Of a stretch of DNA of 64,000 bases, positions 1,683-21,518 are shown one piece after another. The stretch is taken from the IMG/VR virus record IMGVR_UViG_3300032288_004964, positions 1-64,000 of that record; one strand, given 5' to 3'. Under the pieces are notes generated by a model. The model was not told the DNA's origin, searched no databases, and saw only the letters and a list, made by a program, of their open reading frames with translations. Made by a program: the position numbers and the translations under genes. Every line of letters begins with the position of its first letter. Within the stretch, counting starts at the first letter, position 1.

Positions 1683-1683
1683 T

Positions 1684-3078: not shown

Positions 3079-3081
3079 AAT

Positions 3082-5470: not shown

Positions 5471-6168
5471 TGTCAGTAGGTAGTTTAGATATAATAACAG
5501 ATGGATTGGTATTTTATGTGGATATTATTAATGACAAATCATATCCTGGTTCTGGTACAAATTGGTATGATCTTACTTCTAATGGTAATAATGGATCATT
5601 TAGTGGAAGCCCAACGGTCAATCAAAGATTTATTGGTTTCGATGGTGTTGTTGATTACATCAACTTTGGTTCTATTGGTCAATTACAGTTTTCAAATAGC
5701 GATGATTACTCAATATCAACTTGGTTTAGATGGACTACAAACTTAAATACTATACAGACCGTATTTAGCTATGCTCTATCAGGTGGTGCTGGTTATTATA
5801 TTGTTTTGAATTATCCCTCAAGTGATGTAGTACTCTCTGATTACTATGATGGTTCTAATTATCGTGGATTGAATACTAACTCACCAATTCCTAAAAATGA
5901 GTGGTGTAATATAGTAGTGACATCTGATACATCAAATTCATCAGCTGGTATGAACATTTATCTAAATGGTGAAATTATGAGTTGTACATCAAGAGGTTTT
6001 GGACCACCTAATTCTATAAACTATAGTGGTTTGGATGTAAATATTGCCACCAGAATGAATTCTGATTGGTTTGAGGGTGATATCTCTTCTATTATGGTTT
6101 ATAATAGAGCTCTGACACCTCAAGAAATACTACACAATTACAACAAATTAAAATGGAGGTTTTTATAA
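5470..6168 (+). CDS. LamG domain protein (1 domain)
   Basis: IITDGLVFYVD...SYPGSGTNWYDL...YNRALTPQEILHNY; start overlaps the upstream stop (taatg). Confidence 0.85.
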   Translation: MSVGSLDIITDGLVFYVDIINDKSYPGSGTNWYDLTSNGNNGSFSGSPTVNQRFIGFDGVVDYINFGSIGQLQFSNSDDYSISTWFRWTTNLNTIQTVFSYALSGGAGYYIVLNYPSSDVVLSDYYDGSNYRGLNTNSPIPKNEWCNIVVTSDTSNSSAGMNIYLNGEIMSCTSRGFGPPNSINYSGLDVNIATRMNSDWFEGDISSIMVYNRALTPQEILHNYNKLKWRFL

Positions 6169-6183
6169 AATAATATATAGATT

Positions 6184-9100
6184 ATGGCATCACAAAGAGA
6201 TATAAGAATAACCCCTAAGTTAGGATCTACAGCATCAAATGATTACCCAAATATTGATTTTGGTGGATTAAGTGCATCAACTATTAAATTAAAAGTTGAT
6301 GATGATGGTACAGTTGTTTATACTGGTACTTACGGTGTTCTTTTCAATGTAACTGATGAGAAGTTTGGACTTTTACATTCGGTTAATGATGTGTCAGGTT
6401 TACCTATTTTACAAGTTTATTCTTGGGATTATGTTCAGTTAGGAAAATGGGATAAATATGCCCTATCTGTTGCTACTGATAAAGTAGGTATTGGTTTAAC
6501 TGCTCCAAGTAATAAACTTCATATTTATTCAACACAATCTGATGCTTTCAGACTACAAGATGGTAGTGAAGGTTCTGGTTATGTTTTAGTTTCTGATGCT
6601 AATGGTGTTGGTAGTTGGTCTGCTAGTGCTGGTGGTGGTGGATCTGCTGTTATTTTATTGGGAGCTGGTGCTGGATCAAGTGTTAGATGTGGTTTAGGTA
6701 ATAATGCTTCTGGTGTTTGTTCAACTATAAGTGGTGGTTATAAAAACACAGTATCTAATGCACATTCAACTATAGGTGGTGGTAGTAATAATACTATATC
6801 CGGTAAATATGCTAATTGTTCAACTATAAGTGGTGGTTATCAAAATACAATCTCCGGTTATGGTTATTTTTCATTTGTTGGTGGTGGTGGTTGTAATTCA
6901 ATCTCTGGTAATAATTCATGTTACTCAACTATAAGTGGTGGTTATCAAAATACAGTCTCCGGATTTAAATCATACTACTCAACTATAAGTGGTGGTGTTC
7001 AAAATACAATATCTAGTTATTATTCCTCTTGTTTTTCATCTATAGGTGGTGGTAAATCAAACACAATTTCCGGATATTATTCATATCAATCAACAATCAG
7101 TGGTGGTTATTCTAATACAATCTCTGGTTATAGTTCATATTTATCGACTATAAGTGGTGGTTATGCTAATACAATCTCTGGTACAAATTCATACTCATCA
7201 ACAATCAGTGGTGGATGTCAAAATACAATCTCAGGATTTAACTCATATGAATCAACCATAGGTGGTGGTAGAAATAATACAATCTCAGGTCATTACTCAT
7301 TCGCATCAACAATCAGTGGTGGTGTGTTAAATAATGTAGTTGGGTATCAATCTTATGCAAACACTATATCTGGTGGTGTTCAAAATACAACATCTGGTGA
7401 TTACTCTACAATAGGTGGGGGTCGTTGTAATACAATATCAGGATCATATTCAACAAATTCAACAATAAGTGGTGGTTATCAAAATACATCTTCCGATAAA
7501 TATACTACTATTGGTGGTGGTTGTTTTAATGTGTCATCTGGTAGTGCTTCTACTATAGGCGGTGGTCTTAATAATACAGCATCTGGTTACTGCTCTACTA
7601 TATCCGGAGGTTCATTAAACTGCGCTTCTAATCAACTAGCTACTGTTGGTGGTGGTACTCTTAATAGCGCGAGTGGTATTAACTCTACTGTTGCTGGTGG
7701 TTGTTATAATACATCTACTAATACATTTGCTACAGTTGGTGGGGGTGTATTAAATCAATCTGATGGCGAATCTTCAACAATCAGTGGTGGGTATTCTAAC
7801 TTTATAGAAACTAGATCATATCAATCAACAATTAGTGGTGGTGGTTCAAACTCAATTGACAATTCATGTCAATCAAATATAGGTGGTGGTTATCAAAATA
7901 CAATCTCCGCTACTAATTCATATCAATCAAATATAGGTGGTGGTTATCAAAATATAGTATCTGGTGATAATTCATATTTATCAACCATAAGTGGTGGATA
8001 TCAAAACAAAATTTCTGGTATTCAATCATTCAAGTCAACAATAGGTGGTGGTGGTTCAAACTCAATTTCCGGTGCCATTTCAGAAGTATCAACTATTGGT
8101 GGTGGTTATTGTAATACAATCTCTGGTTTTTACTCATGTTTTTCAACTGTTGGTGGTGGTAAATTGAATACAATCTCTGGTTATTCTTCATATGCTTCTA
8201 CTATAGCTGGTGGTGGTGGTAAATTTGGAAATACAATCTCTGGGTTACATTCACAGAAGTCATCCATAGGTGGTGGTGATGCTAATTTAATATCTGGTGA
8301 TAATTCATATTTATCAACTATAAGTGGAGGATATTTTAATACAATCTCAGGTCAAAGTTCATATATGTCTAGTATTGGTGGTGGTAGAGATAATACAATC
8401 TCCGGTTATAATTCGTATTGTTCAACTATAGGCGGTGGTAATGTTAATACAATCTCTGGTACAAATTCGCAATTATCAACCATATCTGGTGGTCAATCTA
8501 ATGCAATCTCAGGATTTAATTCATATAGGTCAACTATAAGTGGTGGTTATCAAAATACAATCTCCGGTTACTATTCATATATATCAACTATAAGTGGTGG
8601 TAGACAAAATACAATCTCTGGTAATAATTCATATCAATCAACTATAAGTGGTGGTTATGCTAATACAATATCTGGTACAAATTCGCAATTATCAACTATA
8701 AGCGGCGGTTATTGTAATACAATCTCCGGTTATAATTCAGATAAATCAACTATAAGTGGTGGCCTTTTAAACACAATTTCTGGTTATCGATCATGTCAAT
8801 CAGCTATAGGTGGTGGTAATGCTAATACAATATCTGGTCAATGTTCGGTAGCATCAACTATTGGTGGTGGTAATGCTAATACAATCTCTGGTTATAATTC
8901 AGATAAATCAACTATAAGTGGTGGTGAAACTAACTACATATCTGGTACAAATTCATATAAATCAACAATTAGTGGTGGGTATCAAAATACAATATCCGGT
9001 CAAAATTCACAAATATCAACTATTAGTGGAGGATATGGCAATTTAGTCTCTGGGTTCAATTCATATTCATCAACTATAAGTGGTGGTAGACAAAATACAA

Positions 9101-10938
9101 TATCTGGTGATAATTCACAAATCTCGGTTATAGGTGGTGGTTCTCAAAATACAATCTCTGGTTATATTTCATATTGGTCAACTATAAGTGGTGGAAATAG
9201 TAATACAATCTCAGGAACCATTTCAGCTTTTTCAACTATAAGTGGTGGATACTGTAATTTAATATCTGGTCAATGTTCTTACTATTCAACTATAGGTGGT
9301 GGTAGACAAAATGAAATCTCAGGTTATTACTCATGTCTATCAACAATAAGTGGTGGGTGTAATAATACAATCTCTGGTTACTATTCACATTGTTCAACTA
9401 TTAGTGGTGGTAAATCGAATACAATATCTGGATTTAATTCATATCAATCAACTATAAGTGGAGGTTTCCAAAATACAATCTCTGGTTGTCAATCATATGT
9501 TTCAACTATAAGTGGTGGTACACTAAATGTGATATCTGGTGATGTTTCATATTTATCAACAATAAGTGGTGGGTATCAAAATACAATCTCCGGTACAAAT
9601 TCACAATGTTCAACTATTGGTGGTGGTAAACAAAATACAATTTCTGGTGATACTTCATATCTATCAACCATAAGTGGTGGTCTTGCTAATACCATCTCAG
9701 GAGTTTACACAAATAATTCAACCATAGGTGGTGGTGCTCAAAACTGTATATCAAGTCAACTTTCAGTAAATTCAACTATAGGCGGTGGTCAATCTAATAT
9801 AATCTCAGGTTATTGTTCATCAAATTCAACTATTAGTGGTGGTGAAACTAACTACATATCTGGTGTTACTTCATCCTATTCATCTATTGGTGGTGGTCAG
9901 ACTAATACAATCTCAGGAGATTGCTCACTTCAATCAACCATATCAGGTGGGTATTGTAATGCAATCTCTGGTACTAATTCTTATCAATCAATTATTGGTG
10001 GCGGTGCTAAAAATGAAATTTCTGGATTTAACTCATATAAATCAACTATAAGTGGTGGTGCTCAAAACTGTATATCTGGTCAATGTTCGGTAGGATCAAC
10101 TATTGGTGGTGGTATTCTAAATATAATTTCAAACGCTCCATGTAGTTCTATACTTGGTGGATGTAGTAATACTATAAATGGTATGACAGGTTCTGTTATT
10201 ATTGGGTCTGGTATAACTGCTTGTAGACAATATACAGCACATGCTAATGATATCATTATCACATCCATGACATCTTCAGTTTCTTGTTTTGTTGCTGTAG
10301 GTGCTGATGGATTATTAGTAGCAACATCATCTACCGGTGGTGGTGGAGCAAGTTTTTCTGGTACTGCTAATGTATTTACTAAATTCACATCCGCAACTAC
10401 AATTGGAGATACTTTATATGATGTACATGAAGATTCAACTGGTAGTAAATTATCATTTGGTCCTTCAACGGATACTGATGCTATCTCATATGGTCAAATA
10501 GCGCATTCTAAAGATAATATACTTACTAAGGGAGATGCTCAAACTAGTCAGATAATTCTAAAAAGAAATATCAATCCTAGTTCTTCCGGTCTTTTATATC
10601 CTGATAATGGTCTTACTCAATATCTTTATATACCTATTGATGGTGTTATAGCATTCGAAGTTCATGTAGTTGCTTTATCAACTGGTGGATCTGGCAATGC
10701 TACATTTATAAAGATTGAAGGTGCTGCTAAAAATATAGGTGGGTCTCCTGCTATAGTTGGTGGTGGAACAACCACTATAACCGTATCCGAGGACTCAATT
10801 GGTTTGCACGCAGTTAGAACGGTGAGTGTTAGTGGTTCCGGTTCTACATCTCATTTAACTATAGAGGTTGATAACAACTCAAATACGGAAAATGCTAATT
10901 TTGTAGCTTATGTGAGATATACTCAAACATTATACTAA
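6184..10938 (+). CDS. Repeat-rich fibre/adhesin-like protein (beta-helix/beta-roll STISGG repeats)
   Basis: Fibre-type N-terminus (VGIG...LHI...FRLQDG..G.GYVLVSDANGVGSW) followed by about 60 ~18-aa STISGGxxNTISGxxSxx repeats; TAATATATA promoter at 6171. Confidence 0.8.
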   Translation: MASQRDIRITPKLGSTASNDYPNIDFGGLSASTIKLKVDDDGTVVYTGTYGVLFNVTDEKFGLLHSVNDVSGLPILQVYSWDYVQLGKWDKYALSVATDKVGIGLTAPSNKLHIYSTQSDAFRLQDGSEGSGYVLVSDANGVGSWSASAGGGGSAVILLGAGAGSSVRCGLGNNASGVCSTISGGYKNTVSNAHSTIGGGSNNTISGKYANCSTISGGYQNTISGYGYFSFVGGGGCNSISGNNSCYSTISGGYQNTVSGFKSYYSTISGGVQNTISSYYSSCFSSIGGGKSNTISGYYSYQSTISGGYSNTISGYSSYLSTISGGYANTISGTNSYSSTISGGCQNTISGFNSYESTIGGGRNNTISGHYSFASTISGGVLNNVVGYQSYANTISGGVQNTTSGDYSTIGGGRCNTISGSYSTNSTISGGYQNTSSDKYTTIGGGCFNVSSGSASTIGGGLNNTASGYCSTISGGSLNCASNQLATVGGGTLNSASGINSTVAGGCYNTSTNTFATVGGGVLNQSDGESSTISGGYSNFIETRSYQSTISGGGSNSIDNSCQSNIGGGYQNTISATNSYQSNIGGGYQNIVSGDNSYLSTISGGYQNKISGIQSFKSTIGGGGSNSISGAISEVSTIGGGYCNTISGFYSCFSTVGGGKLNTISGYSSYASTIAGGGGKFGNTISGLHSQKSSIGGGDANLISGDNSYLSTISGGYFNTISGQSSYMSSIGGGRDNTISGYNSYCSTIGGGNVNTISGTNSQLSTISGGQSNAISGFNSYRSTISGGYQNTISGYYSYISTISGGRQNTISGNNSYQSTISGGYANTISGTNSQLSTISGGYCNTISGYNSDKSTISGGLLNTISGYRSCQSAIGGGNANTISGQCSVASTIGGGNANTISGYNSDKSTISGGETNYISGTNSYKSTISGGYQNTISGQNSQISTISGGYGNLVSGFNSYSSTISGGRQNTISGDNSQISVIGGGSQNTISGYISYWSTISGGNSNTISGTISAFSTISGGYCNLISGQCSYYSTIGGGRQNEISGYYSCLSTISGGCNNTISGYYSHCSTISGGKSNTISGFNSYQSTISGGFQNTISGCQSYVSTISGGTLNVISGDVSYLSTISGGYQNTISGTNSQCSTIGGGKQNTISGDTSYLSTISGGLANTISGVYTNNSTIGGGAQNCISSQLSVNSTIGGGQSNIISGYCSSNSTISGGETNYISGVTSSYSSIGGGQTNTISGDCSLQSTISGGYCNAISGTNSYQSIIGGGAKNEISGFNSYKSTISGGAQNCISGQCSVGSTIGGGILNIISNAPCSSILGGCSNTINGMTGSVIIGSGITACRQYTAHANDIIITSMTSSVSCFVAVGADGLLVATSSTGGGGASFSGTANVFTKFTSATTIGDTLYDVHEDSTGSKLSFGPSTDTDAISYGQIAHSKDNILTKGDAQTSQIILKRNINPSSSGLLYPDNGLTQYLYIPIDGVIAFEVHVVALSTGGSGNATFIKIEGAAKNIGGSPAIVGGGTTTITVSEDSIGLHAVRTVSVSGSGSTSHLTIEVDNNSNTENANFVAYVRYTQTLY
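6721..10180 (+). repeat. ~54-bp degenerate tandem coding repeat (tcaactataagtggtggt...aatacaatctctggt)
   Basis: Directly visible in DNA and protein. Confidence 0.95.
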
Positions 10939-10991
10939 GATGAAAATTAATATATATATAGAATTATAGATAAAAATTAAAAAGAACGTGA

Positions 10992-13900
10992 ATGGCTTAT
11001 ATAATTAATAACAGTGATGGTTTTAGGTTTAATTCTGGAACAGGTCCAGGAATAATTTATCTTGGGGGTGTTACAATTTCATCAAGTAATGATGCTATAG
11101 CTATTAGTAAATTAGATTTAGGTACCGAGAATAATCCATTTATTCTATCAGCATCTGGAAGTAGTATTTATGTAAATAATAGCGTTTTTTCATCTTTTGA
11201 TAGTAAGACAATTTTAGTTGCCTCGGATGGTGCTGATTTTACATCAGTTAAAACAGCTATAGAAAGTATAACAGATGCTACTGCTTCTAATGTTTATACT
11301 GTTAGAGTAAGATCTGGTATTTACTATGAACAACCATTTACTATTCCTTCTTATGTTGCTTTAGTTGGTGAGAGTTCAATTTCAACAATTATACAAGCTA
11401 CCTTTTCCGATCAGACTTTAGTAACATTGTCAGATCAGTCTGGTATTTTTGATGTTCAGATACAAGGATGTACTGATACTGGGGCTGCTGCTGTTGTTTA
11501 TTCTTCTGCTACTACACCACAGACCAATGCTATTGCATATGTTGAAAATGTTAGGTTTGGTCAGAATTACACACATGCTAAGGTTATAGGTACTGGAAGT
11601 AATGGAAACTGTATTATGCAGTGTTCTAATATAAAATATGGTGGATATTCATTTACCTTAGGTTTTCATGCTACAAATGCTGGAACTGGTATCGGTAGAA
11701 TGCAATTAAGAAATGTTACCTCAACTAATGGTGGTATTACAACAACAACAGGATTAGTATTTGCAAAGGCTGATGCAAGTGGTTGCGGATTTATAGTTAA
11801 TGGATGTTTATTAACTAAGTCTGCTGGTGCTGCTGCTGGTACTGGTTTTCAAGTTGAAAATGGTGGATTTTTAAGATTAACTGGTGTTAATTTTCAAAGA
11901 TGGGCAACTGCTATTTATGCACCGAATGATTCGGGTTCTCCTAGTATTGATGCTATTGCTCTTAATTTTGAAAACAATACAATTGATATACAAATAGATA
12001 ATACAAAGGCAACTGGTAAAATACAAGGAGCAGATTCATATACAAAAACAATAATTAGCGCGACCTCATCATTGTATGTCGTTAATAAGGATCCTAAAAG
12101 AATTCAAGTTGCTAAGAAAGGTGGTGATTTTTCTAGTGTTGCATCCGCAGTTAATTCCTTAAGTAATACATCTGAATCAAATAGATATGTTATTGAAGTG
12201 GGACCAGGTGTATTTTATGAGGGTTTAATAGACCTTTCTACCAAGCCTTATGTGAGTATTGTTGGATCTAATATTCAAACAACTCAAATAGTTGCATCAT
12301 ATTCTAATCATAATTTGATAAAAATGGGATTAGCTAATGAAGTATCATTTCTTTCCCTTAATGATGTTGGTTCTGGATATGCTGCCATTATAGCTGATGA
12401 TAGTGGAGATTTCTCGCAGGTACATAAGTTATCATTTTATAATTGTGATATTGGTATAAAAGTTCTATCAGCATCTCAAGATACTTTATTTTATGGTGAA
12501 TATGTTGATTTTAATGGATCCTATTCAAGAGCAGTAGTATTGGATTCACAATCTAGTGGTTACAGAGCTTTTGCTAATATTGAAAATTTTTATTGTTTTC
12601 CGAGTGCAACTGGAAGTAGAGCAGTTGAGGTTCTTAATCCACTTGCTGAAGTAAATATTGCCGCTGCTTCGATTCAAGGAGCTGGAAATGACATAGGTAT
12701 CTATGGTGAAAATGGTGCTATATTAAATGTTACCTCGATGGATATATTAGCTTATGAAACTGGATTATATATTGAAAATGCTGGGACATTCTCAAGCTTT
12801 GACTTTAATGCTGTTACAATTGACGATACTACAACAGTGCCTATTAATGTTCAACATCCTTATACTAAAGGTCTTTTTCAGGGATCATTGAATGATCACA
12901 CAACAATAGTAAATAATTCGGAATCTGTATATTGGCAATTTTTAGATCGATTGGACGGTGAGATTAATATCACAAGAAAAGGATCTGTTACATTTGTTGA
13001 TGGTACTACTACTGACTTTACCGCTTTACTTTTTGAGTCAGCTCCTATGGGTATTCTATCCGGTGGTGAGATATCTATTTCATCTGGTTTAACAGTTAGT
13101 ATATCCTCAGGGTATGGATATTTGGAAAATACAACAGGTGATGTTTATCAAAGAATTGATTGGTCAACTAGTCTTTATCAGTTACCTGATAATAGTTCTT
13201 CATATATTTATATTAATGAAAATAGTAATATTGTAGATAATACTTCTCTACCAAGTATTACTAATAATATAGTATTAGGTCGTGTAGTGACATTAAATGG
13301 TGGAATTTTATTTATTGAAAACACCAGAGTTGATAGTAAACACTCTAGTAATAAATTGAATCTTTTTAATAGAAGAGCTTTTGGTTCTATTTATGAATCA
13401 GGATCTATTGTTACCGAAGGTTCTTTCTCACAAACCCTAAATGTTACTTCAGGTTCATATTGGTTTGGTAATGCTAATTTTGCTCCTACTGGTGGATCGG
13501 GTATTACATTCTCACAATTCTATAGAGATGGTTCTGGGGGATGGATTATTTCATCAACTACTGGAGTTACCGGTAGATATGATGATGGATCTGGATCTTT
13601 AGTTGCTATGACAACTGGGTACTATACTAAACATACTCTCTATGTTGTTGGTGAGGGTTTTGATGAAAAATACTTATTAGTTGTCGGTCAATCCGAATAT
13701 GCAAATCTAGTAGATGCTGAGGCTAGCGCTCTCTCCACGCCACCATCATATATTGACGGTGCTGTAGTTTCTATAGCTGCTATTTATATGCAACAAGGTG
13801 GAACAGGAATATTACAAATAGAGGACATAAAACCTGTTCTTGGATTTAAATCATCAGGTGTTAATGCTTCCTCTGATCACGGTAATCTTTTAGGTTTAGC

Positions 13901-14909
13901 AGATGATGATCATCCACAATATCTTTTAGCAGATGGTACAAGGTCTATGACTAATAATTTAGTAATGGGTTCTAATTCTATAACTGGAGTTCTTCAAGTA
14001 AATGGAGTAACTATTGAATCACATGCTTCAAGACATTTACCAAATGGTTCAGATCCTTTAACTACTGGTGTCCCATACTCAATAGGTACAGTTAGTTCTG
14101 AAGGTATATTAAATGCGTTTGCTAGACAAGATCATATTCATGCTCATGATGACCAACCGGGTGGTTCACTACATTCCGTTGCTACTACTGACTCAAATGG
14201 ATTTATGTCATCTACTGATAAGACAACTTTTGATGCAATTCCAACAACTTATGTAAATAAATCCGGTGATACGATGACTGGTGGGCTAACTATGTCTGGT
14301 GGTTTAGTAATGAACTCATATTCTATATTTAGTGTATTAAAAGTAAATGGAGTTGTTGTTGAATCACATGCTTCAAGACATCTACCTGGTGGTCTGGATG
14401 CCTTAACTACTGGCACTCCATCATCAATAGGTACTGCTAGTTCTGAAGGTTCGGTAAATGCCTTTGCTAGACAGGACCATATTCATGCTCATGATAATCA
14501 ACCAGGTGGTTCACTACATTCCGTTGCTACCACTGACTTAAATGGGTTTATGTCATCTACTGATAAGACAACTTTCGATGCAATTCCAACAACTTATGTA
14601 AAGATTAGTGATGGTTTTTATAGCATAGTTAGTGTAACTACAACTACATATAATGCTGCTCAAACAACTGGTAATCCAGTTTTATTAGTTAATACAGTAA
14701 CTGCCGGTGGTAGTGTTACTATTAATCTACCAACTGCTGTAAGTAACAAGGCTATTTTTACTATTAAAAAAATAGATTCTGGCGCGTCTAGTGTAGTTAT
14801 TGATGGAAATTCAACACAAACAATTGATGGATCATTGACGGCTACAATTACTGTTCCATATACCTCAATAACTTTAGTTTCTGATAATTCTAATTGGTAT
14901 ATAATATAA
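10992..14909 (+). CDS. Tail fibre/tailspike-like protein with pectin-lyase-type beta-helix modules and His-rich repeats
   Basis: Two pectinesterase-like caps (VASDGADFTSVKTAI; VAKKGGDFSSVASAV), DHGNLLGLADDDHPQYL, HASRH/DHIHAH motifs, and a fibre-type C-terminal domain (TINLP...IKKID...IDG...W). Confidence 0.7.
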   Translation: MAYIINNSDGFRFNSGTGPGIIYLGGVTISSSNDAIAISKLDLGTENNPFILSASGSSIYVNNSVFSSFDSKTILVASDGADFTSVKTAIESITDATASNVYTVRVRSGIYYEQPFTIPSYVALVGESSISTIIQATFSDQTLVTLSDQSGIFDVQIQGCTDTGAAAVVYSSATTPQTNAIAYVENVRFGQNYTHAKVIGTGSNGNCIMQCSNIKYGGYSFTLGFHATNAGTGIGRMQLRNVTSTNGGITTTTGLVFAKADASGCGFIVNGCLLTKSAGAAAGTGFQVENGGFLRLTGVNFQRWATAIYAPNDSGSPSIDAIALNFENNTIDIQIDNTKATGKIQGADSYTKTIISATSSLYVVNKDPKRIQVAKKGGDFSSVASAVNSLSNTSESNRYVIEVGPGVFYEGLIDLSTKPYVSIVGSNIQTTQIVASYSNHNLIKMGLANEVSFLSLNDVGSGYAAIIADDSGDFSQVHKLSFYNCDIGIKVLSASQDTLFYGEYVDFNGSYSRAVVLDSQSSGYRAFANIENFYCFPSATGSRAVEVLNPLAEVNIAAASIQGAGNDIGIYGENGAILNVTSMDILAYETGLYIENAGTFSSFDFNAVTIDDTTTVPINVQHPYTKGLFQGSLNDHTTIVNNSESVYWQFLDRLDGEINITRKGSVTFVDGTTTDFTALLFESAPMGILSGGEISISSGLTVSISSGYGYLENTTGDVYQRIDWSTSLYQLPDNSSSYIYINENSNIVDNTSLPSITNNIVLGRVVTLNGGILFIENTRVDSKHSSNKLNLFNRRAFGSIYESGSIVTEGSFSQTLNVTSGSYWFGNANFAPTGGSGITFSQFYRDGSGGWIISSTTGVTGRYDDGSGSLVAMTTGYYTKHTLYVVGEGFDEKYLLVVGQSEYANLVDAEASALSTPPSYIDGAVVSIAAIYMQQGGTGILQIEDIKPVLGFKSSGVNASSDHGNLLGLADDDHPQYLLADGTRSMTNNLVMGSNSITGVLQVNGVTIESHASRHLPNGSDPLTTGVPYSIGTVSSEGILNAFARQDHIHAHDDQPGGSLHSVATTDSNGFMSSTDKTTFDAIPTTYVNKSGDTMTGGLTMSGGLVMNSYSIFSVLKVNGVVVESHASRHLPGGLDALTTGTPSSIGTASSEGSVNAFARQDHIHAHDNQPGGSLHSVATTDLNGFMSSTDKTTFDAIPTTYVKISDGFYSIVSVTTTTYNAAQTTGNPVLLVNTVTAGGSVTINLPTAVSNKAIFTIKKIDSGASSVVIDGNSTQTIDGSLTATITVPYTSITLVSDNSNWYII
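13998..14600 (+). repeat. Internal duplication of ~86 aa at 345-bp spacing
   Basis: VNGV..ESHASRHLP.G...DKTTFDAIPTTYV occurs at 13998 and 14343. Confidence 0.95.
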
Positions 14910-14927
14910 AAATAAAATAAATAGAAT

Positions 14928-15383
14928 ATGGCATATAATCCTAATAATCCAAATGGTCAAGCAACAATGGCGAATAGTGCCCCGGTTACTATAGCTTCTG
15001 ACCAACCAACACCTTCTCCGCATAATATTACACAGACTCAGGTTCATAAAGATGGTGTCTATACAAATACACAGACTTCAACTTCTATATGGGCTCCTGC
15101 TTCTGGTAAAAAATTTGTAATAACTGATATAACAGTTACTAGTGGTGGTACAGTTGCTGGTGTTGTTACTATATATGATGCGGCTTCTGCTACTGCTTAT
15201 GTGGCTGGTACACATCCCGCTATATTCAGAGGTGAATTTGCCCCAACAACAACATCAAGACCTGGTGTTGTTAAAAGCTTTGTTAATCCTTATGTGTCAA
15301 CAACTGCTAATAATAACGTATTGGTGACAACATCTGCGGCAATTAACCCCTTATATATACAAATAAATGGATATGAGATATAA
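14928..15383 (+). CDS. Hypothetical virion structural protein
   Basis: Thr/Ala-rich beta-type ORF in the fibre operon. Confidence 0.6.
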   Translation: MAYNPNNPNGQATMANSAPVTIASDQPTPSPHNITQTQVHKDGVYTNTQTSTSIWAPASGKKFVITDITVTSGGTVAGVVTIYDAASATAYVAGTHPAIFRGEFAPTTTSRPGVVKSFVNPYVSTTANNNVLVTTSAAINPLYIQINGYEI

Positions 15384-15386
15384 TAT

Positions 15387-16094
15387 ATGGCACTAGCATT
15401 TACACAATTGGCAGTTGGATTAGCATCCACAACTAACGGAACAGGAGCATATACAGCAACTGCCGGAACGCCGGTCGCTGGTGATTTACTTATATGTTTT
15501 GTGTTATGTAGTGGTAATTCAACGGTCGGTACTTTAACTGGTGGTGGTTGGACATGGACAAGATTGACTACATTTACAAAAACTGGTGGTGCTGATATTG
15601 CATCTATATGGTATGCTTATGCAAGTTCTAATACCTCTACCGCTCCATCATATACTCCTTCTTCTGCAGCAAGTGGTTGTTTAATTCATTGTGTTAGAAT
15701 AACAGGTGGTGAAGGAAAACTTCAACCTTATATAAGACAATTTGCTACTAATAGTGGAACTGGTGCTAATCCTACAGTTGTTTTCTCAACAGCTCCTTTA
15801 ACTGGTAATGGTATATTAGCGTGGGCTTCAAATGCTACTAATAGTACTACTCAATGGACAGCACCGACTGGATTGACTGAGATAGCTGAATTGGCATTTA
15901 ATAATCCAGCTAACTCATTAGAGATAGCAAGAGCTATATCTGGTGTTACAGCGACTACATTAACTTGGACTAATGCTCAGGTTACTGCATGGGTTACATA
16001 TGCTATTGAGCTTTATAATGCAGGAACTGGACCAACTAGTACTACTGATATAAATAGTGGTGATGGTTTCTTTGGATTGGTAAATACAATATAA
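15387..16094 (+). CDS. Hypothetical virion structural protein
   Basis: Thr/Ala/Gly-rich with a GDLLI motif, in the fibre operon. Confidence 0.6.
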   Translation: MALAFTQLAVGLASTTNGTGAYTATAGTPVAGDLLICFVLCSGNSTVGTLTGGGWTWTRLTTFTKTGGADIASIWYAYASSNTSTAPSYTPSSAASGCLIHCVRITGGEGKLQPYIRQFATNSGTGANPTVVFSTAPLTGNGILAWASNATNSTTQWTAPTGLTEIAELAFNNPANSLEIARAISGVTATTLTWTNAQVTAWVTYAIELYNAGTGPTSTTDINSGDGFFGLVNTI

Positions 16095-16109
16095 AAAAAT
16101 TATATAAAA

Positions 16110-16310
16110 ATGAAGACAAGAGTAATAGAACTGGTAGAAAAACAAACCGTTGATGGAAATATTAATCTAATTGCAGAGTGTAATGATTATGAAAATGGTG
16201 AAAGAACTCAACAACTTTCTAGATCGCCATTTACATTTACATCTACAATGACTGACGACGAGATTAAGTTATCTATTCAATCTAATCAATATTCAATTTA
16301 TTTTAGTTAA
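16110..16310 (+). CDS. Small hypothetical protein
   Basis: 66-aa ORF filling the gap, with an A-rich leader. Confidence 0.6.
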   Translation: MKTRVIELVEKQTVDGNINLIAECNDYENGERTQQLSRSPFTFTSTMTDDEIKLSIQSNQYSIYFS

Positions 16311-16339
16311 ACTTTTATTATATCATAGATATAATATAC

Positions 16340-17224
16340 ATGGATAAATTTGCAATATTTCATCTCGAGGGTGGGTTAGGAAAACATGTTGCTGCTACCG
16401 CAGTTGCTGAATGTATAAAGAATAATTACCCAGATAGAAAACTTTTAGTTGTTTGTGCTTATCCAGAAGTTTTTTTAAATCTAAAGTTTATTGATAGAGT
16501 ATATAAAATAGGAATGACTCCTTATTTTTATAATGATTATATTGATGGTAAAGATTCATTGATATTTAAACACGAACCTTACTTTACAACAGAACACATA
16601 CATAAAACACTACCTTTAATAGAAAATTGGTGTAAACTTTATAATCTTAATTATAGTGGTGAAATGCCTTCTTTAGTTTTTAATGCAAAGCAAAAACAAT
16701 TAGGTATTAATAGATGGAAAAGAGATAGACCAATAATGGTTATTCAAACTAATGGTGGTCCACTAACAAATCAGCCTTATATTAACTCTTGGACAAGAGA
16801 TATTCCAATTTACTTATCTGAGATAATAGTAAATCACTATAGAAATGATTATCATATTATTCAGATTTGTAGAGCAGGATCTGTAGCTATGCAAGGAGTT
16901 GAAGTTGTGTCAGATAGTATGTCTAATATGGAGTTATTTTCTCTATTATTAGTTTCTCAAAAAAGAATTTTAATAGATTCTTGCTTACAACATGCTGCTA
17001 CTGCTCTTGGATTATCTTCGGTTGTTCTTTGGGTTGGTACCTCCCCTAAAGTTTTTGGATATAATCTTCATAGAAATATTGTAGCTAATCTTCCAAATGA
17101 TATTGTGAAATTACCAGATAGTTATCTATTTGATTATAGTTTTGAAGGTATTTTACATGAATATCCTTCATTAGAATCAGAAGTTTTTGATCCTAATGTA
17201 GTGATACAACAAATTAATTTATAA
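16340..17224 (+). CDS. GT-B fold glycosyltransferase, GT9 (heptosyltransferase)-like
   Basis: EGGLGKHVAATAV near the N-terminus; IDSCLQHAATALGLSSVVLW..T.P..FGY is the GT9 C-terminal signature. Confidence 0.75.
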   Translation: MDKFAIFHLEGGLGKHVAATAVAECIKNNYPDRKLLVVCAYPEVFLNLKFIDRVYKIGMTPYFYNDYIDGKDSLIFKHEPYFTTEHIHKTLPLIENWCKLYNLNYSGEMPSLVFNAKQKQLGINRWKRDRPIMVIQTNGGPLTNQPYINSWTRDIPIYLSEIIVNHYRNDYHIIQICRAGSVAMQGVEVVSDSMSNMELFSLLLVSQKRILIDSCLQHAATALGLSSVVLWVGTSPKVFGYNLHRNIVANLPNDIVKLPDSYLFDYSFEGILHEYPSLESEVFDPNVVIQQINL

Positions 17225-17227
17225 TAT

Positions 17228-18046
17228 ATGCCAAAGAAAATATTCTTTCAAAGTTCCTTGCCTAGATCAGGATCAACTCTTTTACAAAATATAATGGGTC
17301 AAAATCCAGATTTTTATGTAACACCAACTAGTGGTGTATTAGAACTTGTTTATGCTGCTAGAAATAATTACACAAATTCACCTGAGTTCAAAGCACAAGA
17401 TTCAGAACTTATGAAAAATGGTTTTGTTAATTTTTGTAATTCGGGTATTAACGGATTCTTTAATGCTATAACTGATAAACCTTATGTTATTGATAAAAGT
17501 AGAGGATGGGGAGTTCATTATCAATTTTTAAATTCATTTTATCCAGATCCAAAGATTATTTGTATGGTTAGAGATTTAAGAGGTATTTTTGCTTCAATGG
17601 AAAAAAACTTTAGAAAGAATCAGCATCTTGATTCTGGTATTGTTAATCATGCTCAAATGACAGGAACAACAACAGAAAAAAGAATTGATATTTGGGTAGC
17701 AGGTCAACCGGTTGGTATTTCTATAGAAAGATTATATCAAGTTTTTAGAGAAGGTATAAATCAAAAAATGTTGTTTATTAGATTTGAAGATTTAACATCA
17801 AATCCACAGAAGGAAATAGAAAGAATTTATGAATATTTAGAGGTTAATCCATTCAAACATGACTTCAATAATGTTCAACAAATAACAGTAGAAGATGACT
17901 CAGTTTATGGTATTTATGGAGACCATAGTATAAAAAGTAAAATAGAACCTCTTAAAAATGATTATAAAGAAATTTTAGGACAAGGAGCTTGTGATTGGAT
18001 TAAAAATAATTACAAATGGTTCTATGATGAATTTAAATATTATTAA
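17228..18046 (+). CDS. Sulfotransferase (PAPS-dependent)
   Basis: 5'-PSB loop LPRSGSTLL, DKSRGW, 3'-PB motif MVRDLRGIFAS, RFEDL. Confidence 0.9.
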   Translation: MPKKIFFQSSLPRSGSTLLQNIMGQNPDFYVTPTSGVLELVYAARNNYTNSPEFKAQDSELMKNGFVNFCNSGINGFFNAITDKPYVIDKSRGWGVHYQFLNSFYPDPKIICMVRDLRGIFASMEKNFRKNQHLDSGIVNHAQMTGTTTEKRIDIWVAGQPVGISIERLYQVFREGINQKMLFIRFEDLTSNPQKEIERIYEYLEVNPFKHDFNNVQQITVEDDSVYGIYGDHSIKSKIEPLKNDYKEILGQGACDWIKNNYKWFYDEFKYY

Positions 18047-18047
18047 T

Positions 18048-18076
18048 AAAAAACCCACTCTAAAGTGGGTTTTTTT
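18048..18076. terminator. Bidirectional intrinsic terminator
   Basis: A6-CCCACT-ctaa-AGTGGG-T7 between convergent genes. Confidence 0.85.
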
Positions 18077-19217
18077 CTATTATATCTTTAATTTTTTCTA
18101 TTACCATTTCACCAGTTATTGACTTACTACATTCAAATTGTTTATCAGCTCCTTTATTAACAGGACACCAATTCCAATCACCAGCATCTAATCTATAATC
18201 ATTAAAACATCCAGTGCATTTGCCTTTAGGTGTTTCTATTCTAATTGTATTTTTAATTGTTTCTGTATATGTGTAACTAAATCCAGATATAATACAAGTT
18301 GTTGTTCCGGTTGCCCAACTTAACCAACTCAATCCAGATCCTATTCCAATAAATAATTTACTTTTCTGAAGAACCTTTATTACTTCTTCTATACTTCCAT
18401 TAGGGTGTTTCTCGATTCCTTCTGGATGTTCATTACCCATATATCCATCTTCCTCTCTCGAAATTAAAATAACTCTCCATCCTTTAGATTTTAGGTAATC
18501 AACCACTTCTTGCCAACCTTTTTCATTATTCCAATATTTTGACTGAGCCGTTCCATGAATAGCAATGCTTACTATATTTTCTTTTTGTATAGAACTATTC
18601 ATTGTTATTTTTGGTCTTATTTCCTTATGATCTAGTCCTAATATATCACTAGCTGTTTGTTGAAGTGGTCTTAATCTGAAGTTATTAGGATTATTGTTGA
18701 AATTAAAATCACCATCTTCATAATACCATCCAATATTATATTGAGCTGTTATATTATTTGCTGGAAGACCTCTTGGTATGAACTCTATTTCTGGATATTC
18801 ATTTTGGAATAAATTATTCCAAAATGTAGAACAGATAACATGACAATTATGTTTTTTTCTAAATTCATCTACATAAGGAATCCAAGCTAAATTATCACCT
18901 AAAGAAGATGAATCAAAGCATATAAAAACTCTTTTACCTTTTAAATCTAAATCTATATTATAGACTTCCTCTCCTTTGTTTTTATTTATAGATATTGACC
19001 AATCAATAAAATAAGACTTACTGGCTTTTATCCAGTGGTTCTCTGTGATTTTACCCATGTGATGTAATCTTCCTGTCTTTTTATCCTTAAATGAGACTTC
19101 AAATTCATCACCTGGTGAGTTTAATATTTCTACAAAAGGTCCTCTTATGTAGTTAACATTTATTATAGGATCTTTTTTTCTTATTATATTTGTATTTCTT
19201 ACTAAATTATTATACAT
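18060..19217 (-). CDS. Autotransporter strand-loop-strand O-heptosyltransferase (TibC/AAH, BAHT family)-like protein glycosyltransferase
   Basis: SSSLGDNLAWIPY catalytic motif, PLQQTASDILGL, TAQSKYWNN..GW, FIGIGSGLSWLSWA, and a C-terminal 4-Cys Fe site CTGC-x13-C-x11-C. Confidence 0.85.
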   Translation of the reverse strand: MYNNLVRNTNIIRKKDPIINVNYIRGPFVEILNSPGDEFEVSFKDKKTGRLHHMGKITENHWIKASKSYFIDWSISINKNKGEEVYNIDLDLKGKRVFICFDSSSLGDNLAWIPYVDEFRKKHNCHVICSTFWNNLFQNEYPEIEFIPRGLPANNITAQYNIGWYYEDGDFNFNNNPNNFRLRPLQQTASDILGLDHKEIRPKITMNSSIQKENIVSIAIHGTAQSKYWNNEKGWQEVVDYLKSKGWRVILISREEDGYMGNEHPEGIEKHPNGSIEEVIKVLQKSKLFIGIGSGLSWLSWATGTTTCIISGFSYTYTETIKNTIRIETPKGKCTGCFNDYRLDAGDWNWCPVNKGADKQFECSKSITGEMVIEKIKDIIEKNPL

Positions 19218-19218
19218 A

Positions 19219-20853
19219 TTATTCTTTTGATTTTGAAAATTGAAGAAGACCTTCTTGATTAACTTTATTATCCTGTTTTAGAGATTCAAATGATATTTTA
19301 TAAATATTTAAATTTTTAGAATCTAAATGTTTTTTTAATTTATCTTCCAAAGTATTATAAGGTTCTAATGTATAATAATCCTCTCTACTTTCGAAATGAT
19401 TAAAAAATGATAAAGAATGTTCTATTTTTGATGATAAGAACCCAGAACAGTAACCATCATATTCATTTTTTTCATATTTATAAATAATAATATCAAAATT
19501 ATCTAAAAGCCTAGAATTATCATTAAGTACTTTATTAGATATTTGATAATCATAATTTATTATATGCACTTTTTTATATCCAAGTCTTTCTATAAAATTC
19601 AATCCATCTTTTATTAAAGAATAAGCAGCATATCCGTGTTCAAATTCAAATGGAGTTGTTGTTTTATTTCCATTGATATCTATGCGCCAATAATTATAAT
19701 TTACATTATATTTTTTAAATTCCTCTTTATATAATAAGGGATTATTTTTATTATAAATATAATAATCACATAATAATTGATTTTCCTCACTTACCGGATA
19801 GTTTGTCGATAAGACAACTGGTAGACTAATAGAACTTAAGCATTCGTTTAGTAGATTTTTTCTATAATTTGTATTAGCATGCGCGACAACTAAACAAATT
19901 GAATCACTTTCAGATTTTATTTCAAAGTGTTCTAATATCAAATTTTTATTAACCAAAACATTATCTGTTATATATTTAGCTTCTTTATATTTAGGGTAAG
20001 TTTCTAAGTCTTTAATAAAAATTGGAAGACTATAACTAAGGGCCTCTTTTATAGAGATTGGATTAAGTTCCCATAGTGATGGAAAATAAAATAAGTCACT
20101 AGCCATATAAAATTTATCAACATCATTTCTCTCACCATGTATTATACAGTTTTCTGGTAAATTAACCATTAAAGGTTCCCAATAATCTTTGAAATTAATA
20201 GCTTGATTTCCTACAAAATGAAATTTAATTTTTTCATTTGAACAAAGTCTCGCCAATTCTATTATATGTTTTTGATTTTTACCAGGTGTGAATAAGCCGA
20301 CATTTAAAATATGTTTATATTCTTTATCAAATCCTAATTCCTCTTTAGCCTTATCCTTATCATAATCAATTTTTATAATAGGATATTCCCATATATCACA
20401 AGGAATACTTCCTTGAAATACTTTATCAAATACGCCTTTACTCCATTCTGAGACTAAAATAAATTTATCAGCAGTATATTTAATATTTTCTGGTTTAGTA
20501 TTAGATGAATGTGTTGTTGCTAAAATATAATAATTTCTACTCTCATCATATACCTCTTTTAAGATAGCATCATCTACAAAAGTATCTGGTATTTCCTCAA
20601 AGTGTATTATATCAGGATTTATATTTTTAATAATTTCCAACAGATATTTTTTATCATCTGATAATCCAAAAAATTTATTACCTAATAGATTTTTAATTTG
20701 ATTTCTTTGAACCACATAAGCATCTCCGTAGTAGGTATATTCAACACAATAAATATCAAAATCATTTATAAATGATTTAATCTTTTCTAATAAGTATTGT
20801 GGTTGACCACCGGTTGATAAGTGTGGTGTTATGAATAACAGTTTTCTTTTCAT
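19219..20853 (-). CDS. GT4 glycosyltransferase with an additional C-terminal domain
   Basis: TPHLSTGGQPQYL; NVGLFTPGKNQ; FYFPSLWELNPISIKEALSY (EX7E). Confidence 0.85.
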   Translation of the reverse strand: MKRKLLFITPHLSTGGQPQYLLEKIKSFINDFDIYCVEYTYYGDAYVVQRNQIKNLLGNKFFGLSDDKKYLLEIIKNINPDIIHFEEIPDTFVDDAILKEVYDESRNYYILATTHSSNTKPENIKYTADKFILVSEWSKGVFDKVFQGSIPCDIWEYPIIKIDYDKDKAKEELGFDKEYKHILNVGLFTPGKNQKHIIELARLCSNEKIKFHFVGNQAINFKDYWEPLMVNLPENCIIHGERNDVDKFYMASDLFYFPSLWELNPISIKEALSYSLPIFIKDLETYPKYKEAKYITDNVLVNKNLILEHFEIKSESDSICLVVAHANTNYRKNLLNECLSSISLPVVLSTNYPVSEENQLLCDYYIYNKNNPLLYKEEFKKYNVNYNYWRIDINGNKTTTPFEFEHGYAAYSLIKDGLNFIERLGYKKVHIINYDYQISNKVLNDNSRLLDNFDIIIYKYEKNEYDGYCSGFLSSKIEHSLSFFNHFESREDYYTLEPYNTLEDKLKKHLDSKNLNIYKISFESLKQDNKVNQEGLLQFSKSKE

Positions 20854-21518
20854 TTTTTATAAAATGGTTTTTCTACCCAGTTGGGTAAATCTAAATTTGA
20901 TATTATATTCAAATCCTGTTCTTTATTTTTATCAAATTTATCATAATCAAAATATGGATTATTAAATTGACAAATTGATTGTTTGCCTCTTCTAATAACA
21001 CCACATCCCCAATCTTTATTAACTACACAAATGTCTAAGTCATATCTTGTGCATCTCATCTTATATATGGCTTTCCAAACAGTTCCATTCCAAGCATCTC
21101 CAGCAGTTGTACTGTGATCATTGTAATAAGCCCTGGCATGATGTTCGGTAGGTGGATTACAATCATGTAAAACTATACTACCATTTTCTGAAAGATGATT
21201 TAGTGCATTATTTATATCTCTTTCTACTTGATCAGAAACATGTAGACCATCTATGAATATTATATCCCATTTGTAATCAAATGGTTTATCCAATAAACCA
21301 TTATCTATCATTGAGAAGAAGCTATCCGATGTGTATTTATATTTGGCTTGATTATTATCTGTTTCTAATCCAGGATCTACAGAATCTTTTGATTCACATT
21401 TAATATGGTTAAAACAATGAGATGGTTCTCTAAGACCTATTTCTAGATATTTTTTATAATTAAACTTTTCTGATAAAAAGTTAATGATATCAATTCTACT
21501 TTCAATTTGTTTTTCCAT
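20850..21518 (-). CDS. Class I SAM-dependent methyltransferase (Methyltransf_24-like)
   Basis: YLEIG, DIIFIDGLH...D..NAL..L..NG.IVLHD, WNGTVWK. Confidence 0.85.
   Translation of the reverse strand: MEKQIESRIDIINFLSEKFNYKKYLEIGLREPSHCFNHIKCESKDSVDPGLETDNNQAKYKYTSDSFFSMIDNGLLDKPFDYKWDIIFIDGLHVSDQVERDINNALNHLSENGSIVLHDCNPPTEHHARAYYNDHSTTAGDAWNGTVWKAIYKMRCTRYDLDICVVNKDWGCGVIRRGKQSICQFNNPYFDYDKFDKNKEQDLNIISNLDLPNWVEKPFYKK

Follow-up and report, generated by a model that had tools for sequence, protein, structure and literature searches.

Bacterial autotransporter heptosyltransferases (BAHTs), as represented by TibC/TibA and Aah/AIDA-I of Escherichia coli, are known only as virulence-associated modifiers of bacterial autotransporters. 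TibC is a cytoplasmic enzyme with an N-terminal beta-barrel, a GT-B core, a hairpin thumb region and a four-Cys iron finger, which grips a monomeric right-handed helix of about 19-residue strand-loop-strand repeats, and the TibA acceptor Ser-313 is the Ser of an N-S-G-G turn (PMC4358343). A second BAHT-family protein, BimC of Burkholderia, is genetically paired with BimA, a YadA-like trimeric autotransporter, although BimC is described as a targeting and iron-binding partner without mention of BimA glycosylation in the text consulted (PMC11499645), and at 43.85% identity to TibC it belongs with the classical enzymes. Virion glycosylation in tailed phages is documented for very few systems. In mycobacteriophages, phage-encoded glycosyltransferases reportedly decorate the phage's own structural proteins (Freeman et al. 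2023), but the enzyme families differ, the targets are reported to be the C-terminal tails of capsid and tail-tube proteins, and no BAHT, sulfotransferase or repeat fibre is reported to be involved. Collagen-like Gly-X-Thr/Ser repeats serve as dense O-glycosylation platforms on surface filaments in the BclA exosporium glycoprotein of Bacillus and in the collagen-like fibrils of giant viruses, with other glycosyltransferases in other organisms, and no equivalent is known for tailed phages. In the library searched, no paper describes phage BAHTs or phage O-heptosyltransferases, or mentions the Microcystis phage Mel-JY01 discussed below.

Here we examine a 64,000-nucleotide stretch (the window) of a 385-kb T4-like jumbo phage, in which a TibC-type enzyme and four other sugar-modifying enzymes lie inside the fibre-gene block. 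The features are as follows.

3..1682 (+): collagen-like fibre protein and candidate acceptor, its N-terminus cut by the contig end, with about 265 residues of (GTS/GSS)n followed by a globular C-terminal domain; ORFs 10..378 and 388..801 are out-of-frame shadows.
1684..6168 (+): three LamG-like virion structural protein genes (1684-3078, 3356-5470, 5470-6168), which mark a baseplate/fibre block.
6184..10938 (+): predicted beta-roll repeat fibre of 1584 aa and candidate acceptor, with an N-terminal domain, 62 coils of mostly 18 residues (nt 6721-10149) and a C-terminal domain of about 260 residues.
10992..14909 (+): 1305-aa tailspike-like protein with a weak pectin-lyase-fold signal and a duplicated C-terminal module.
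16340..17224 (+): putative GT9-like (GT-B) glycosyltransferase with no iron finger, first gene of a conserved pair with the sulfotransferase.
17228..18046 (+): PAPS-type sulfotransferase.
18048..18075: terminator-like hairpin with a 12-pair stem, flanked by an A-run on one side and a T-run on the other, so it could act in both directions; it overlaps the last codons of the BAHT.
18060..19217 (-): BAHT-family (TibC/Aah-like) putative protein O-glycosyltransferase of 385 aa, with Asp-108 at nt 18894-18896 and the iron-finger cysteines spanning nt 18129-18218.
19219..20853 (-): GT4 glycosyltransferase (N-terminal about 310 aa) with a C-terminal half without family assignment, ending 1 nt before the BAHT start.
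20850..21518 (-): Methyltransf_24 (TylF-like) O-methyltransferase, overlapping the GT4 start by 4 nt.

The first-pass annotation had described a BAHT with an LGD motif and a CxxC-x13-C-x11-C signature, a fibre of about 60 SGG repeats some 7 kb upstream, GT9-like, GT4, sulfotransferase and methyltransferase neighbours, and a second Ser/Thr-rich candidate acceptor at 3..1682, and each of these observations is borne out by our analysis. Its interpretation, that the BAHT glycosylates the SGG-repeat fibre, AIDA-I/TibA-like in its repeats, and that the four neighbours extend and cap that glycan, is supported only in part. Two corrections apply. The BAHT lies on the opposite strand from the fibre, in a convergent operon, so that "7 kb upstream" is only a distance, and the repeat is related to trimeric-autotransporter heads rather than to AIDA-I/TibA repeats.

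The 18060-19217 product is a full-length member of the BAHT family. It scores 277.4 bits against a cut-off of 200 for NCBIfam TIGR04414 (hepto_Aah_TibC), covering profile positions 25-374 of 374, and phmmer matches it to TibC (4rap/4rb4) at E about 1e-56. An AF2 model (pLDDT 87.8) shows eight N-terminal strands, and Foldseek aligns it to TibC chains at TM 0.82-0.84 over 377-401 alignment columns with E down to 1e-34, while WaaC/GT9 structures reach only TM 0.40-0.53. The catalytic base Asp-110 of TibC, within the LGD motif, corresponds to Asp-108, the beta-phosphate residues Thr-226 and Lys-230 to Thr-223 and Lys-227, and the heptose O4 contact Trp-305 to Trp-298, all invariant or nearly so across the family, and Cys-334/337/351/363, with the exact spacing C-x2-C-x13-C-x11-C, align to the iron-finger Cys-339/342/358/370. 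The exception is Arg-286, which contacts adenine N1 and is given as the basis for the use of an ADP-activated donor (PMC4358343). It is Val-279 here, and whereas Arg is present in 36/38 classical BAHTs, 59/60 members of the clade of this enzyme carry V/I/T/L/M, so that ADP-heptose as donor, and the predicted +192 Da mass shift, are not secure.

The fibre holds 62 STISGGxxNTISGxxSYx units between residues 180 and 1322, with 49 of the 61 spacings at 18 residues, and TRF finds a 54/108-nt period with about 40 copies (score 930-1045). Its 15-residue stretch (residues 375-535) aligns to the UspA1 head (3pr7) at E 1e-21, the shared motif being S-T-I-G-G-G-x-x-N-x-A-S-G. Among 2183 relatives at E<=1e-5, some carry LbR_Ice_bind, UspA1_rep, YadA_head and Peptidase_S74 (PF18792, PF21300, PF05658 and PF13884 among them), and relatives also carry tail-fibre chaperone domains. 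The fibre itself matches no Pfam model at E<=0.01, has no autotransporter domain, coiled-coil stalk or membrane anchor, and no signal peptide by inspection; it is a phage fibre, not an autotransporter. An AF2 model of residues 693-1052 (pLDDT 95.5) is a regular short-strand solenoid, but Foldseek against PDB gave no significant match (best E 0.04, to an RTX beta-roll), and the assignment to a UspA1/YadA-head-type beta-roll therefore rests on sequence similarity. Alignment of shifted repeat windows as pseudo-homologues gave nothing, as MAFFT returned them to true register, and real homologues were used instead. The fibre differs from solved heads in its mostly 18-residue coils and in having Ser rather than Gly before the GG in about half of the turns. 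Thirty-six units carry Ser before the GG, and the fibre places Ser there in 53% of its turns against a median of 19% in 119 relatives. Locally the motif resembles the AIDA-I repeats, which read ..TVNSGGxQxVSSGG.., in the form STISGGYQNTISG, although the period is 18.

The remaining genes were assigned largely by profile searches. The sulfotransferase matches Sulfotransfer_3 (PF13469) at 2e-20, 74 bits against a cut-off of 27, and Sulfotransfer_1 at 1e-12, and has a visible N-terminal P-R-S-G-S-T loop. The GT4 matches Glycos_transf_1 at 3e-16 and the methyltransferase Methyltransf_24 at 2e-8, the latter domain being fused to the GT4 in most other phages. The 16340-17224 product gave no Pfam, NCBIfam or PDB sequence hit; hhalign against the BAHT alignment gives 91.6% (E 8e-7, 179 columns), its Atlas neighbours carry PF01075, and it has Lys where GT9 enzymes have the catalytic Asp of L-G-D. 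The LamG-like genes match PHROG 24074 and 8510 ("virion structural protein") and, more weakly, baseplate-wedge and tail-fibre families. The tailspike-like protein matches Pectinesterase at 6e-6, below the cut-off, and is absent from the close relative (L019/L085; L-numbers denote the comparison loci), so it is not an obligatory part. The C-terminal domain of the collagen-like protein matches phrog_17490/28536, and the homologous position in L019 (12918-15101) gives a Pfam Collagen hit at 3e-28. Genes within each glycosylation module are tightly packed, with 1-nt and 3-nt gaps and one 4-nt overlap, and the two modules converge on the hairpin. The T4 late-promoter motif TATAAATA occurs 25 times against 20.7 expected and does not mark the glycosylation genes, so no timing can be inferred, and sigma-70-like sites are below the shuffled expectation.

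Co-occurrence of the BAHT with SGG-repeat genes across related phages, which the first-pass annotation had set as a check, was not found in general. Of 81 phage BAHT loci, only this one and its 89%-identical relative have such a fibre within 10 kb. The BAHT tree splits into a classical and a phage-type clade on a 100/100 branch, with the window's enzyme in the latter. In the classical clade an SGG-rich giant protein is adjacent in 19/38 records, the substrate gene of classical loci lying immediately beside the BAHT and usually directly downstream, and a GT4 is present in none. In bacterial records of the phage-type clade, 0/17 have an SGG-rich neighbour and 7/17 have a small secreted (G-S/T-S/T)n protein within 2 kb, against 0/38 in the classical clade. 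Fisher p is about 1e-4 for each contrast, but the rows are related and these values are indicative only. L160 adds a Ser-run protein with the same signal peptide. In phage loci a GT4 homologue lies next to the BAHT in 75/81, or 41/43 after dereplication, and a collagen-like Gly-Ser/Thr protein lies within 10 kb in 9/43, including cultured Mel-JY01, which carries a fused version of the cassette, and all three members of the sister group of this BAHT. In the 89%-identical relative a GSS collagen-like gene lies 1.8 kb from the BAHT, whereas in the window the distance is 16 kb. Across genomes the collagen-like protein is the better-supported partner of this clade. However, the largest phage subclade (26 dereplicated rows) has neither a collagen-like nor a beta-roll gene within 10 kb, only a fibre of about 2300 aa ending in a tail-fibre chaperone-like C-terminus. 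The flanks compared are only 10 kb, many loci come from a few lineages so that counts are not independent, and a background set built from the LamG structural protein returned only 3 loci, too few for a background rate of collagen-like or beta-roll genes in fibre blocks.

The steady partner of the beta-roll fibre in other phages is instead the GT9-like/sulfotransferase pair, which is linked in nearly all of 59 phage loci. Lineages whose GT9-like gene is at least 57% identical to the window's and that have a readable upstream flank carry a beta-roll-type repeat fibre 0.1-2.5 kb upstream (L088, L089, L230, L233, L236, L238, L239, L240, and L234 with a variant repeat). There the pair comes with GT8, a short BAHT-derived enzyme and often APS kinase, the last, which directly follows the sulfotransferase in related phages, lying next to its orthologue in L089, L093 and L230-L240. 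The short BAHT-derived enzymes, which follow beta-roll fibres in L230-L241, were considered as possible keepers of Arg-286, but they lack both Arg-286 and Lys-230 in the alignment and form a very long branch. A search of the 64-kb window for APS kinase, GT8, GT60 and the nucleotidyltransferase-containing giant protein that follows the BAHT in most phages found none. Fibres next to the cassette mostly have 41-62% Ser before GG, 1.7-2.8 SD above the family trend, although those of L236 and L238 are not Ser-rich. Conversely, the expectation that Ser-rich beta-roll proteins have the cassette nearby held for two such proteins, P0139 and P0224, and failed for bacterial P0229, which has no glycosylation genes nearby; P0225 and P0201, on short contigs, are left out.

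We tentatively propose a model of fibre decoration that best fits these observations. Two glycosylation modules are inserted in the fibre-gene block. Module 1 (GT9-like enzyme and sulfotransferase, 16340-18046) runs in the same direction as the fibre genes and would most likely place a sulfated sugar on the beta-roll fibre, whose coils place a Ser before the GG of the turn. Module 2 (methyltransferase, GT4 and BAHT, 21518-18060 on the minus strand) is a cassette found in many phages, in which the phage-type BAHT would O-glycosylate Ser (or Thr) of repetitive fibre proteins in the cytoplasm, the GT4 would extend the sugar and the methyltransferase would cap it. Its best-supported acceptor class is the collagen-like Gly-Ser/Thr protein, here 3..1682, and the beta-roll fibre may be a second acceptor. 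Our analysis establishes the enzyme families, the conserved catalytic residues, the gene linkage and the repeat anatomy, whereas virion proteins as acceptors, the assignment of enzyme to fibre, the order of steps and the donor, which may not be ADP-heptose, are inferred from sequence and gene context alone, and any heptosyltransferase activity, dodecameric ring or iron binding would rest on analogy with TibC.

The first-pass model, in which the BAHT uses ADP-heptose to hyper-heptosylate the SGG serines of the 6184-10938 fibre and the other four enzymes build upon that one glycan, appears unlikely. In its favour are the resemblance to the TibA and AIDA-I turns, an SGG count typical of classical BAHT neighbours, the enrichment of Ser before GG, the retention of the fibre and all five enzymes together in L019/L085, the divergent BAHT-derived enzyme behind beta-roll fibres in L230-L241, and the BimC/BimA precedent. 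Against it, 79 of 81 phage BAHT loci have no such fibre within 10 kb, the clade has no SGG-rich neighbours in the bacterial records, the adenine-reading Arg is replaced, and the fibre is related to left-handed, probably trimeric, beta-roll heads. Furthermore, no heptose-pathway gene was seen among the larger ORFs of the 64 kb that were scanned, and the two modules are separate operons that occur apart in many other phages.

It is equally unlikely that the enzymes act on the host, remodelling lipopolysaccharide, capsule or host surface proteins during infection, for example to block superinfection or adsorption of progeny to debris, and sit among fibre genes only because that region tolerates insertions. 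The GT4, GT9-like, sulfotransferase and methyltransferase families mostly build envelope glycans, the BAHT matches no PHROG family at E<=0.001, the GT4 falls in a "moron, auxiliary metabolic gene" PHROG, the content of the island varies between related phages, and the bacterial partners of this clade are exported proteins. However, the predicted fold, iron finger and catalytic residues of the BAHT are those of a cytoplasmic protein O-glycosyltransferase, and the modules keep their place directly behind repetitive fibre genes across divergent phages with different enzyme sets, L086 having a GT60-type polypeptide GlcNAc-transferase in that position. Module 1 also runs on from the fibre genes on the same strand with no convincing terminator-like hairpin between them. 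Least likely is the absence of any enzyme-substrate relation with a neighbouring gene, which could draw on the near-copies among the loci, the missing background rate and the abundance of beta-roll fibres, most of the 2183 having no annotated glycosylation genes, but which sits poorly with recurrence of the association in non-orthologous enzyme sets (full-length BAHT+GT4+MT; GT8+short BAHT+APS kinase; GT60+GT2+HtrL) and, for the Gly-Ser/Thr partner, in bacteria of several orders.

A more far-reaching possibility, which we consider unlikely on present evidence though not excluded, is that phage-type BAHTs are an undescribed, widespread family of viral protein O-glycosyltransferases. At least 288 IMG/VR stretches encode relatives, and about 2400 proteins match at E<=1e-10 across both clades. 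In this view they would have switched both nucleotide-sugar donor and acceptor class, from autotransporter helices to collagen-like Gly-Ser/Thr tracts and beta-roll fibres, and together with the GT4, methyltransferase, GT9-like enzyme and sulfotransferase would give tailed-phage fibres a methylated, sulfated glycan coat, to our knowledge the first sulfated glycoprotein of a bacteriophage. The enzyme, ring-shaped by analogy with TibC, might work processively along a periodic fibre.

Cultured Mel-JY01, with its fused BAHT cassette beside a collagen-like gene, offers an immediate experimental handle. If these modules do decorate fibres, the BAHT family would extend to viruses and to new acceptor folds, a donor-specificity switch would be open to test at a single residue, and sulfation would be added to the list of phage virion modifications. 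A common class of "hypothetical" genes next to tail fibres in freshwater and jumbo phages would thereby be explained, with consequences for host recognition, resistance to proteases and particle stickiness.

The IMG/VR contig IMGVR_UViG_3300032288_004964, of which the window is the first 64 kb, has 385,333 bp. It encodes a T4-type major capsid protein, portal, large terminase and tail sheath, together with three LamG-like virion structural proteins, and the finding therefore lies in the structural part of a jumbo T4-like phage with about 30% G+C. The features described in the first-pass annotation, namely a TibC/Aah-like enzyme, a fibre of about 60 SGG repeats, four neighbouring sugar-modifying enzymes and a Gly-Ser/Thr collagen-like protein, are all real. 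The parts of the region are the following:

3..1682, read in frame 3, about 265 residues of (GTS/GSS)n plus a C-terminal domain, collagen-like; the listed ORFs 10..378 and 388..801 (+), with Val/Leu/Gln/His-rich translations, are out-of-frame shadows of this gene
6184-10938 (+), beta-roll repeat fibre of 62 units
10992-14909 (+), 1305-aa tailspike-like protein
16340-17224 (+), GT9-like enzyme, followed on the same strand by a sulfotransferase
18048-18075, 12-pair terminator-like hairpin
18060-19217 (-), BAHT, in an operon with a GT4 and a Methyltransf_24 enzyme

The BAHT at 18060-19217(-) scores 277.4 bits on NCBIfam TIGR04414 (cut-off 200) over the whole profile and matches TibC chains at E about 1e-56. 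An AF2 model (pLDDT 87.8) superposes on TibC at TM 0.82-0.84, including the N-terminal beta-barrel, while LPS heptosyltransferases reach only 0.40-0.53. Asp-108, Thr-223, Lys-227 and Trp-298 align to TibC Asp-110, Thr-226, Lys-230 and Trp-305, and Cys-334/337/351/363 align to the four iron-finger cysteines. In the fibre, 49 of the 61 spacings between units are 18 residues, and the 54-nt tandem period has about 40 copies. The product of 16340-17224 has no library hit, but it matches the BAHT/GT9 core in a profile-profile comparison (91.6%) and its protein-language-model neighbours carry PF01075.

The 15-residue stretch of the fibre aligns to the head of the trimeric autotransporter UspA1 (3pr7, E 1e-21), and more than 2000 related proteins were found in the large database, many of which carry LbR_Ice_bind, UspA1_rep, YadA_head and tail-fibre chaperone domains. 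A model of residues 693-1052 built on real homologues is a very regular solenoid of short strands (pLDDT 95.5), although a Foldseek search with the fibre model returned no significant PDB match. On the strength of sequence similarity we therefore regard it as a beta-roll fibre of the YadA/UspA1-head kind and not an AIDA-like helix. The local motif is nevertheless close to the AIDA-I repeat, and the mapped TibA acceptor, Ser-313, is the Ser of N-S-G-G (PMC4358343). In the family the residue before GG is Gly in 47% and Ser in 21% of motifs, whereas this fibre has Ser in 53%, about 2 SD above a weak compositional trend.

To place the enzyme we collected 81 phage loci, 80 loci from bacterial genomes and two Aah/AIDA-I plasmids. 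A maximum-likelihood tree of 98 dereplicated sequences splits into two clades on a 100/100 branch. The classical clade holds Aah and enzymes from Negativicutes, Proteobacteria and Lentisphaerota, and has an SGG-rich giant protein beside the enzyme in 19/38 records, and never a GT4; this clade served as a positive control for the SGG test. The phage-type clade holds every viral sequence, plus sequences in Methylococcales, Burkholderiaceae and assorted metagenome bins. In its bacterial records no SGG-rich neighbour occurs (0/17), but seven of 17 have, within 2 kb, a small protein consisting mainly of (G-S/T-S/T)n, several of them with a signal peptide, and an eighth has a Ser-run protein with the same leader. 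These counts rest on 10-kb flanks and on simple patterns for detecting repeat proteins, and the loci are phylogenetically clustered, so that Fisher tests on them are indicative only. The bacterial arrangement, in loci numbered L150-L169, looks like an undescribed enzyme/substrate pair distinct from autotransporter glycosylation, and examples of the neighbouring proteins are:

L161, 11166-12059 (-)
L156, 7240-8229
L163, 8919-9881
L158, 11235-11600 (-)
L160, 11536-12012 (-)

In phages the enzyme is followed or preceded by the GT4 in 41/43 lineages, and the GT4 is usually fused to the methyltransferase domain. A collagen-like Gly-Ser/Thr protein lies within 10 kb in 9/43 lineages, including the cultured Microcystis phage Mel-JY01 and all members of the sister group of the window's enzyme, whereas only the window and its 89%-identical relative have a beta-roll fibre nearby; no background rate stands behind these comparisons. 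In Mel-JY01 (locus L001, PP395634.1, 4750-8430) the BAHT is the C-terminal part of a 1226-aa fusion that is annotated only as 'methyltransferase FkbM' and also holds a GT4-like segment, with a Gly-X-Y-rich reading frame upstream (record positions 2-3049, 606 Gly-X-Y residues) and a cytidylyltransferase-like gene downstream. In the largest phage subclade (L051:1-7437 and about 40 related loci) a Ser/Thr/Gly-rich fibre of about 2300-2500 aa precedes the GT4-MT/BAHT cassette; the L051 copy ends in a tail-fibre chaperone-like C-terminus, as judged by eye, and a related copy in the phage locus L023 has an intein-like (Hint) segment.

Arg-286, which in TibC contacts adenine N1 and is said to explain the use of an ADP-sugar, is present in 36/38 classical enzymes but is replaced by V/I/T/L/M in 59/60 phage-type ones, and the donor may therefore differ. 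In most phage loci (L023:12646-16485, L071:12661-17172 and 55 others) a Lys-rich protein of 1000-1500 aa with an N-terminal CTP_transf_like nucleotidyltransferase domain follows the BAHT, a GNAT domain also being found in L071. This protein may make the donor sugar, but a search of the window found none in the first 64 kb of this genome.

Searching from the fibre and from 16340-17224 gave a different picture. The GT9-like gene and the sulfotransferase form a pair in nearly all of 59 phage loci, and where the GT9-like gene is at least about 57% identical to the window's and the upstream flank is readable, a beta-roll-type repeat fibre lies just upstream of the cassette, within 0.1-2.5 kb. The pair is then flanked by a GT8 and a short, N-terminally truncated BAHT-derived enzyme, which keeps the Asp, the Trp and the four Cys but lacks Lys-230 and Arg-286 and lies on a very long branch, and an APS kinase, which supplies the sulfate donor, is often present. 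This conserved five-gene cassette lies directly behind beta-roll fibres in the phage loci L230-L241, and in L093/L230 it runs as follows (L093 coordinates):

8338-9078, GT8
9078-9986, short BAHT-like enzyme
9992-10876, GT9-like enzyme
10878-11696, sulfotransferase
11700-12155, APS kinase

Another phage (L086) has a related SGG fibre in a glyco cluster with a PF11397 gene (GT60-type polypeptide GlcNAc-transferase, 2417-3667, 2e-68), a GT2, an HtrL_YibB-like protein and a sulfotransferase 64% identical to the window's. The presence of non-orthologous enzyme sets behind the same kind of fibre is the strongest argument that the fibre is a glycosylation target.

In the window the fibre genes, the GT9-like gene and the sulfotransferase all run on the + strand, while the methyltransferase, GT4 and BAHT form a tightly packed operon on the - strand (a 4-nt overlap and a 1-nt gap), and the two meet at the terminator-like hairpin at 18048-18075. 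In the close relative the tailspike-like gene and two small genes are missing, and a GSS collagen-like gene sits there instead, directly beside the enzymes. The tailspike-like protein (10992-14909) carries two near-identical copies of a C-terminal module of about 115 residues (..HASRHLP.G.D.LTTG..HAHD.QPGGSLHSVATTD..), which is 40% identical to part of a collagen-like giant protein in the phage locus L007. Other genes elsewhere in the window are the following:

22335-23225 (+), a 296-aa protein with three repeats of a C-x2-C-containing module and a C-terminal ..YGDYWHGNP.. motif that recalls endonuclease-like domains, and no Pfam hit
26274-27218 (-), a D12/Dam-class DNA adenine methyltransferase
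27226-27741 (-), a NADAR-domain protein (5e-29), which may form an anti-defence pair with the methyltransferase beside it
40085-41176 (+), a glutamine-synthetase-like gene (both Gln-synt domains), which may be an auxiliary metabolic gene

We propose, tentatively, that the region is a fibre-decoration island made of two modules, as the model that is best supported by these observations. In this view the GT9-like/sulfotransferase pair would serve the beta-roll fibre, and the phage-type BAHT with its GT4 and methyltransferase would serve Gly-Ser/Thr-rich fibre proteins, and perhaps also the beta-roll fibre. The enzyme families, the conserved residues, the repeats and the gene linkage are shown by the analysis, whereas the modification itself and the assignment of enzymes to fibres are inferred, as everything rests on sequence and gene neighbourhood. 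The interpretation given in the first-pass annotation, in which the BAHT glycosylates the SGG-repeat fibre and the neighbouring enzymes extend and cap that glycan, finds only partial support. This single pathway remains possible but unlikely: the SGG motif, the Ser enrichment, the conserved synteny in one lineage, the second BAHT-derived lineage behind beta-roll fibres and the BimC/BimA precedent speak for it, but it is weakened by the lack of general co-occurrence, the different neighbours of the clade and the lost adenine contact. A host-envelope role cannot be excluded.

The searched literature has no paper on phage-encoded BAHTs or on Mel-JY01, and the BAHT of the window matches no PHROG family at E<=0.001. 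Automatic pipelines already label these genes 'autotransporter strand-loop-strand O-heptosyltransferase', and here that label is probably wrong about the substrate and possibly wrong about the sugar.
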